Shown in pieces: positions 31,258-32,162 of a DNA stretch of 64,000 nt. The notes under the pieces were generated by a model. The model saw only the letters and a program-made list of their open reading frames with translations, did no database searches and had not been told where the DNA came from. The stretch spans positions 74,028,001 through 74,092,000 of the forward strand of contig OZ320320.1 in the NCBI GenBank assembly GCA_976226885.1, written 5' to 3'. The translations under genes and the position numbers were made by a program. The DNA comes from Iphione sp. A-MEVVRFRX5. Its lineage: Eukaryota. Every line of letters starts with the position of its first letter. The first letter of the stretch is position 1.

Positions 31258-32162
31258 ACTGAAAAATGCCTGCTGCTAGGCCTTCCTCAACTAACGTTTA
31301 CTGTTGGGCTGTCTCCACTGCTAATAATAATATCCAACTGAGCAAGCTTAGCTGCTAGGCCTTCCCCTACTGACATTTACTGTCAGGCTGTCTATCGCCA
31401 TTAATACAACTAATAATAATATCAGACTGAGCAAAGCTTGCTACTAGCCCTCCTGCTACTGAGGTTTACCGTAGGGCTGTCTCTAATAATAATGATAGTA
31501 ATATGAGACTGAGCAAGGCTTGTGGCTAGGCCTCCTTCTACTGACGTTTACTGTAGGGCTGCCTCTAATAATAATGATAATAATAATGATAATAATAGAC
31601 TGAGCAAGGCTTGCAGCTAGGCCTCCTCCTATATACTGATGTTTACTATAGGGCTGCCTCTAATAACAATGATAGTAATAGTAGACTGAGCAAGGCTTGT
31701 GGCTAGGCCTCCTTCTACTGACGTTTACTGTAGGGCTGTCTCTAATAATAATAATAATAATAATAACAATAGACTGAGCAAGGCTTGCAGCTAGGCCTCC
31801 TCCTATATACTGATGTTTACTGTAGGGCTGCCTCTAATAATAATGATAATAATATGAGACTGAGCAAGGCTTGCAGCTAGGCATCCTTCTACTGATGTTT
31901 ACTGTAGGGCTGCCTCTAATAATAATGATAATAATATGAGACTGAGCAAGGCTTGCAGCTAGGCATCCTTCTTCTGATGCTTACTGTAGGGCTGTCTCTA
32001 ATAATAATGATAATAAAATGAGACTGAGCAAGGCTTGTGGCTAGGCCTCCTTCTACTGACATTTACTGTAGGTTGTCTCTAATGATAATGATAGTAATAT
32101 CAGACAAAGCAAGGCTTGTGGCTAGGCCTCCTTCTACTGACGTTTACTGTAGGGCTGCCTCT
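31258..32162. repeat. ~80-90-bp minisatellite (~11 units) derived from the exon/intron junction
   Basis: Unit GACTGAGCAAGGCTTG(TG/CA)GCTAGGCCTCCTTCTACTGA(C/T)GTTTACTGTAGGGCTG(C/T)CTCT plus a variable (AAT/GAT)n tract. The last unit overlaps the final ~21 nt of the CUB exon. Confidence 0.95.

Follow-up and report, generated by a model that had tools for sequence, protein, structure and literature searches.

In a stretch of DNA of 64,000 nucleotides from Iphione sp. A-MEVVRFRX5 (contig OZ320320.1, positions 74,028,001 to 74,092,000; hereafter the window), an exon that encodes part of a CUB domain runs, across its splice donor, into a minisatellite whose repeat unit contains the exon end, the donor, and the start of the intron. 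The array is probably a neutral, locus-specific minisatellite that arose by tandem duplication across the end of the CUB exon and its donor. The intron would be spliced out whole, with the copied donors silent or nearly so.

The minisatellite lies on the minus strand and extends from 32162 to about 31217 as 11 head-to-tail units of 79–95 nt each, which is within the minisatellite size range (~10–160 bp). Tandem Repeats Finder places it at 31413–32162 (period 82, 8.9 copies, 84% matches, score 964) and, at a longer period, at 31324–32162 (period 174, 4.9 copies, score 1015). A repeat search of the window returns 11 in-register copies at a spacing of 79–91 nt. The array is far beyond chance. Unit starts were set by an approximate search for the 21-nt exon end and by reading of the sequence; one copy with a 1-nt deletion was added by eye. 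The first unit, u01, consists of the last 21 nt of the CUB-domain exon, the donor GT (32141), and ~60 nt of intron. Each unit begins with 21 exon-derived nt; the donor hexamer and a ~40-nt core come next, and the unit closes with a variable (ATT)n-like tail. The initial annotation described a unit of ~21 nt of exon, GTCAGT, and ~60 nt of intron, with about 10 further copies in the intron, and both Tandem Repeats Finder and our reading confirm that description. The layout of the array is as follows.

31217..32162, minus strand: whole minisatellite, 11 units plus a possible 11-nt stub of a 12th
32162, 32081, 31999, 31917, 31835, 31743, minus strand: starts of units u01 to u06, from the fuzzy 21-mer match and reading
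31661, 31566, 31484, 31395, 31316, minus strand: starts of units u07 to u11, from the fuzzy 21-mer match and reading
31485..32081, minus strand: young homogenised block, u02 to u08, 83–96% alike mutually and 84–95% identical to u01
31228..31484, minus strand: old distal units, u09 to u11, 67–83% identical to the others

The (ATT)n-like tails of u07 (31566–31597) and u05 (31743–31771) are longer than those in other units. These expanded tails, a microsatellite nested in the minisatellite, account for the 79–95 nt range of unit lengths. At the distal end, the bases GGTGATAGACA that follow u11 resemble the u09/u10 joint GGCGATAGACA, a likeness that is marginal against shuffles. The array probably ends there in an 11-nt stub of a 12th unit, at ~31217–31227.

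The full-length relatives combine five CUB matches in Pfam with a single LDLa module and a single membrane span. This is the architecture of C. elegans LEV-10. We take the host gene to be LEV-10-like, likewise with one LDLa module and one membrane span, and with at least five CUB domains. When three full-length relatives are aligned to the window by tblastn, the matches fall in collinear exon order at 58670, 40242, 32361, 30831, 25628, 24711, and 24153; the exons were searched one by one. The apparent last coding exon, at ~22225–22240 on the minus strand, terminates in …EKVSIV, and the relatives terminate in …RISIV, …KVSMV, and …HVDSV. The end …EKVSIV looks like a conserved C-terminus of the PDZ-ligand type. 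The features around the array are the following; a slash marks the exon/intron boundary in a sequence.

32142..32365, minus strand: CUB-domain exon, from translation, Pfam (CUB 54–110/110, E 7e-7), and tblastn
32146..32147, minus strand: second in-phase GT, ACA/GTAAAC, 6 nt upstream of the putative donor and present in all 11 units
32140..32141, minus strand: putative authentic donor GT, AAC/GTCAGTAG, from frame continuity and the read-through peptides of relatives
32134..32136, minus strand: in-frame TAG, 5 nt into the intron, from sequence and read-through translation
30834..32141, minus strand: intron of 1308 nt, from sequence reading and exon mapping
30667..30833 (3′ end approximate), minus strand: next exon, first half of the last CUB, starting GG TGC TTC..., from tblastn to P0036 residues 618–671

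The CUB exon, in phase 1 at both ends, encodes 74 amino acid residues, which make up the second half of the penultimate CUB and, after it, a linker of 11 residues. It is preceded by a splice acceptor, …ttttactccag, that ends at 32366. By tblastn, the exon is collinear with P0036 residues 544–610 and with P0033 and P0104; it is present as a single copy in the genome, where no close paralogue was found. Its translation reads CSTDVLDVYS…FRARYEFIERQPYSK. Since the Pfam CUB match stops at …FRARY, the 21 nt that are repeated (32142–32162) encode the linker between two CUB domains. On the far side of the intron, the acceptor AG of the next exon is at 30834–30835, preceded by a pyrimidine-rich tract. 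The array takes up ~925 nt, or 71%, of the intron between them.

We infer the authentic donor at 32141 from the frame and the relatives. With this donor, the last exon base, C, joins the GG of the next exon to encode Arg, and Cys-Phe-Met-Asn… then opens the next CUB. Reading through the donor leads to TAG two codons on (…YSKRQ-stop). Use of the upstream GT at 32146–32147 would instead remove Ser-Lys in frame. The linkers of full-length relatives have 11–13 residues, and the 11-residue linker given by the donor at 32141 fits them better than the 9-residue linker that the GT at 32147 would give. Judged by U1 complementarity, the authentic donor is a weak one, with a U1 duplex energy of −3.2 kcal/mol versus −14.0 for the consensus; the duplex energy is a crude proxy and not a species-specific donor model. 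The donor has a C at +3 (GTCAGT); for P0024, P0136, P0095, and P0130, the read-through implies GTAAG or GTGAG at the equivalent place (32133–32144). Ten of the 11 units share the C at +3, which indicates that the weakening of the donor is older than most of the array.

The units fall into subtypes. In the G-type units, u01, u02, u06, and u08, the donor segment GTCAG goes with the marker CCAC. In the A-type units, u03, u04, u05, and u07, ATCAG is linked to the marker CTGC, and u05 and u07 have a TATA insertion in common. In a tree of the units, the A-type units form one clade (support 0.81), u08 is sister to u01, and u09 to u11 are basal. The alternation A, G, A, G in u05 to u08 explains the 174-nt period as a higher-order repeat. 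Identity to u01 for u02 through u11, in order, is 89, 85, 89, 85, 91, 84, 95, 79, 71, and 72%. The nearest relative of u01 is thus u08, seven units away, and the first 56 nt of the two are identical. The correlation between identity and distance from the exon (Spearman) is +0.25 within u02 to u08 and −0.57 (p 0.09) overall, and the overall trend rests on the last three units.

These observations bear on the proposal, made in the initial annotation, that the array expanded in a polar fashion and that the copies farthest from the exon are the most diverged. The second part stands insofar as u09 to u11 are indeed the most diverged, but there is no smooth gradient away from the exon. Polar expansion itself is not borne out, given the lack of a trend in u02 to u08, the interleaving of the subtypes, and the position of the unit closest to u01. 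Instead, inner units (u02 to u08) that have evolved in concert are bordered by divergent edge units (u09 to u11). From the sequences, this is the usual turnover of a minisatellite, with the inner units homogenised by unequal exchange and the edge left behind. The derived G-type states occur in the intron part of u01, which shows that sequence exchange within the array has involved the working exon end too.

The donor hexamers of the units, as read in the sequence, are as follows.

GTCAGT, minus strand: u01 at 32141 (authentic), u02 at 32060, u06 at 31722, u08 at 31545, and u10 at 31374
GTTAGT, minus strand: u11 at 31295
ATCAG, minus strand: u03, u04, u05, and u07
CTCAGT, minus strand: u09
GTAAGC, minus strand: u03, 6 nt upstream of its ATCAG hexamer

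Every one of the retained donors downstream of u01, the ATCAG and CTCAG variants, and the GTAAGC had been listed in the initial annotation, and all are present in the sequence. The splice site is therefore reiterated inside the intron, with the GT kept in five of the 10 downstream units. The copies in u06 and u08, 419 and 596 nt away, agree with the authentic site at every position from −21 to +35, an interval that includes −3 to +8, and those in u02 and u10 match it from −3 to +8 except at −1. The best U1 matches in the array are found among copies of the upstream GT, namely, GTAAGC in u03 (−4.5 kcal/mol) and ACG/GTAAAC in u09 (−5.5 kcal/mol).

The initial annotation had suggested that the losses of GT may reflect selection against decoy donors. 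Parsimony on the unit tree requires two steps at the G of the GT and none at the T. One is a G to A change at the root of the A-type clade, the other a G to C change in u09; the four ATCAG units, being one clade with linked markers, record a single loss event. The background is a mean of 0.76 steps per column over 70 columns, with at least two steps in 11 of the 70, so that two plus zero steps is no excess. Further, the G of the GT is the second base of the sole CpG of the unit (AAAC/GT), and the C of this CpG has also changed twice, C to T in u02 and in u10. The window is CpG-depleted, with an observed/expected ratio of 0.63 versus 0.86 for GpC. The pattern of the copied GTs is as predicted by CpG decay plus duplication. 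Selection against the copied GTs was dropped as an explanation, since two events at the only CpG of the unit, at a rate no higher than in other columns, give it no support.

The direction of copying can be read from the relatives. A profile-free search against 1.84 billion representatives yielded many multi-CUB proteins as well as nine short ORFs at the exon level, with 39–66% identity over the alignment. A word search with the 74-residue exon gave no candidates within the length range covered. In the alignment of the nine ORFs, …YEFIE-[RK]-[QK]-P-x-S-K is kept, and the linker here is E-R-Q-P-Y-S-K. After the linker, the read-through of the relatives continues with R-K, S-K, S-S, or R-E. At the codon level, R-K, S-K, or R-E corresponds to NGT and then AAR or GAR, as expected where a phase-1 donor, N/GTAAG or N/GTGAG, is translated through. 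The linker and the phase-1 GT, conserved at the same place in relatives, show that both the exon end and the position of the intron are ancestral and that the array was copied from the junction. The birth of the array at an exon/intron junction, as first claimed from the sequence of the window, is thus borne out. The same phase-1 GT further indicates that the intron is old and was merely lengthened by the array. Intron gain according to the Rogers model, by tandem duplication of an AGGT segment, was considered and ruled out, as the ORFs of the relatives end with the same phase-1 GT signature. The opposite direction, in which an older intronic or dispersed satellite, or a transposon-derived array, supplied the present exon end and donor by exonisation, would agree with the derived CCAC marker that the intron part of u01 has in common with u02, u06, and u08, unlike the old units. 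It is contradicted by the relatives, in which both the linker encoded by the 21 exon-derived bases and the donor position are conserved. Nor is the unit found elsewhere in the genome. A 176-nt query against the 1.18 Gb genome matches only in the array. A genome-wide scan with a 25-nt core pattern, allowing up to two mismatches, gives eight matches, all in the array, versus none for a control pattern, and a 26-nt junction pattern with up to three mismatches gives 10 matches in the array and one chance match elsewhere. Rfam has no match in the array, and its one sub-threshold match is outside the array. An origin from a dispersed satellite, a transposon, or a structured RNA is ruled out by this uniqueness and by the sub-threshold Rfam result, and we hold the exonisation scenario to be very improbable. 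Still lower is the probability we give to an assembly artefact, that is, to the array or its copy number having been produced by mis-assembly of a shorter repeat. Arrays of this kind have been mis-assembled in draft genomes, as in the case of BflGb6 (PMC3087553). Here, the units differ by 4–33% in an ordered pattern with subtypes and private indels, unlike collapse or expansion artefacts, the array spans only ~0.95 kb, the assembly is chromosome-scale with 89 contigs, and no run of N is near the array.

Duplication from the junction leaves the question of whether the copied donors do anything. It may be that some of the downstream GTs, chiefly that of u02 at 32060, are used appreciably. The resulting transcripts would contain stops, being either NMD substrates or templates for a truncated, secreted CUB-only ectodomain, and the length of the array or the number of intact GTs would tune receptor output. 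The five decoys that retain GT, the two that are identical over −21 to +35 and the two that differ only at −1 among them, and the weakness of the authentic donor are the local grounds for this proposal. Precedents for it are IFI6 (6-16) and CBS intron 13, in which, by the account of them in PMC1557585, the two nearest pseudo-sites are also used, constitutively, and the association of tandem-repeat length with splicing in many human genes that is outlined in PMC10078293. Against it, the same account of human genes has the authentic donor alone used in F7, LMNB2, and PDGF, and pseudo-sites of F7 with a much better U1 match still fail to compete (PMC1557585). The copied GTs here show no sign of selection. 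Given the in-frame TAG at 32134–32136, each donor downstream of 32141 yields a premature stop; the initial annotation had pointed out that a distal donor would bring in this TAG (…YSKRQ-stop), and read-through translation agrees. Micro-exons, from the TTAG or AG of the unit to a GT, were tried as an in-frame alternative and rejected, for at 19, 17, 13, or 11 nt they all shift the frame into stops. As judged from the reading frame, no decoy use can be in frame, and any use is non-productive. We regard appreciable use of the decoys as unlikely. It is tempting to go further and to propose a heritable splicing rheostat of a synaptic-type multi-CUB receptor. The weak donor and its identical copies would then cause a length-dependent share of the transcripts to be destroyed or to give a secreted ectodomain, and unequal exchange, through which even the working exon end can be replaced, would let the expression level evolve fast. 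This larger proposal we consider a long shot.

The reading that we favour, a neutral minisatellite with silent or nearly silent donor copies, can be put as a series of steps. A segment of ~80 nt straddling the 3′ end of the exon and the donor would have been duplicated in tandem, by replication slippage or unequal exchange. The sequence shows that turnover has gone on since then, with three old units left at the distal edge and with amplification and homogenisation of eight younger units of two subtypes. Amplification was partly as a dimer, and the exon-bearing unit has a share in the process. By analogy with human F7, LMNB2, and PDGF, the spliceosome would pick the most upstream donor, so that the whole array leaves with the intron, and the downstream copies would be silent or nearly silent pseudo-sites. 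Any leaky use of a decoy would stop after …YSKRQ, and the transcript would most likely be degraded. The changes in the copied GTs would be ordinary CpG decay spread by duplication, and the array a neutral, probably length-variable expansion of the intron. Two considerations weaken the assumption of silence. With a weak authentic donor and two decoys that share its local sequence, there may be competition, and, by analogy, two of the five human precedents, IFI6 and CBS, do use their two nearest pseudo-sites. Moreover, the preference for the most upstream site, carried over here by analogy, was shown in mammalian cells, and the present host belongs to another phylum.

The array leaves current understanding unchanged. 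It adds an invertebrate example, for which data are few, to a class of repeats that serves as a natural test-bed for the choice of the spliceosome among identical donors. With a weak real donor and two copies identical to it over 56 nt, it could be used as a natural weak-donor test case. A census of junction-copying repeats as a regular route of intron growth in the lineage is another potential use. Other tandem repeats occur in the window. A 46-nt repeat at 17581–17771 (4.2 copies, 95% matches) has a CpG-rich unit. Degenerate 56–112-nt arrays (TCTACCTGTCCCACTC-like) at 36944–37653 occupy part of the intron that precedes the CUB exon and do not touch any exon. A 12/35/121-nt array at 61437–62171 has Pro/Gly-rich open frames on both strands. 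Runs of N are found in the window at 35292–35482 and 58303–58466.

Minisatellites that span a boundary and reiterate a donor are already known (PMC1557585, PMC3087553), and the decoy idea is not new. In structure, as far as sequence can tell, the present array is a boundary-spanning minisatellite in every respect, of the type called 'mirage' or exemplified by F7-IVS7, its first unit holding the real exon end and splice site at the boundary placed above. In intron 7 of human F7, the first monomer of a 37-bp VNTR spans the exon/intron boundary (Borensztajn et al. 2006, PMC1557585), and a study of 50 constructs showed that the pseudo-sites are functional, yet the most upstream site is chosen (PMC1557585). 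The F7 repeat and the present array have in common the boundary-spanning first monomer, pseudo-donors identical to a non-consensus authentic donor, and a premature stop as the outcome of using most pseudo-sites. The F7 unit is 37 bp with four exon bases, whereas the units here are 79–95 nt with 21. The F7 copies are strictly identical and polymorphic in number (5–9 units), whereas the copies here are 67–96% alike and half are without GT. Splicing of F7 was shown by experiment; the present array is known from sequence.

In unit length and copy number, the closer matches are LMNB2, with a 100-bp unit repeated 10–15 times, and PDGF intron 4, with an 81-bp unit repeated 16–18 times, as both are described in PMC1557585. 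In both, so far as that description goes, the donor is reiterated in the intron as it is here, though these are vertebrate genes unrelated to the present gene. IFI6 and CBS, from what the same source relates, resemble the present array in that a boundary-spanning array supplies many copies of the donor. The 12-nt array of IFI6 differs in that the present array cannot add residues in frame, and where the nearest two pseudo-sites of IFI6 and CBS are used, any use of a decoy here would be non-productive.

The amphioxus mirages (Adh3 and the globins BflGb6 and BflGb9) are tandem repeats across exon/intron boundaries that leave splicing undisturbed (PMC3087553). Like the present array, they are boundary duplications in an invertebrate, with units of up to ~160 bp and many copies that keep the splice signals, and in them, too, the central units evolve in concert while the edge units diverge. 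They belong to another phylum, and differences in length between haplotypes, and even somatic instability, are features of the mirages (PMC3087553). For the amphioxus globin arrays, a role in giving rise to new introns has been proposed, whereas the position of the present intron is ancestral.
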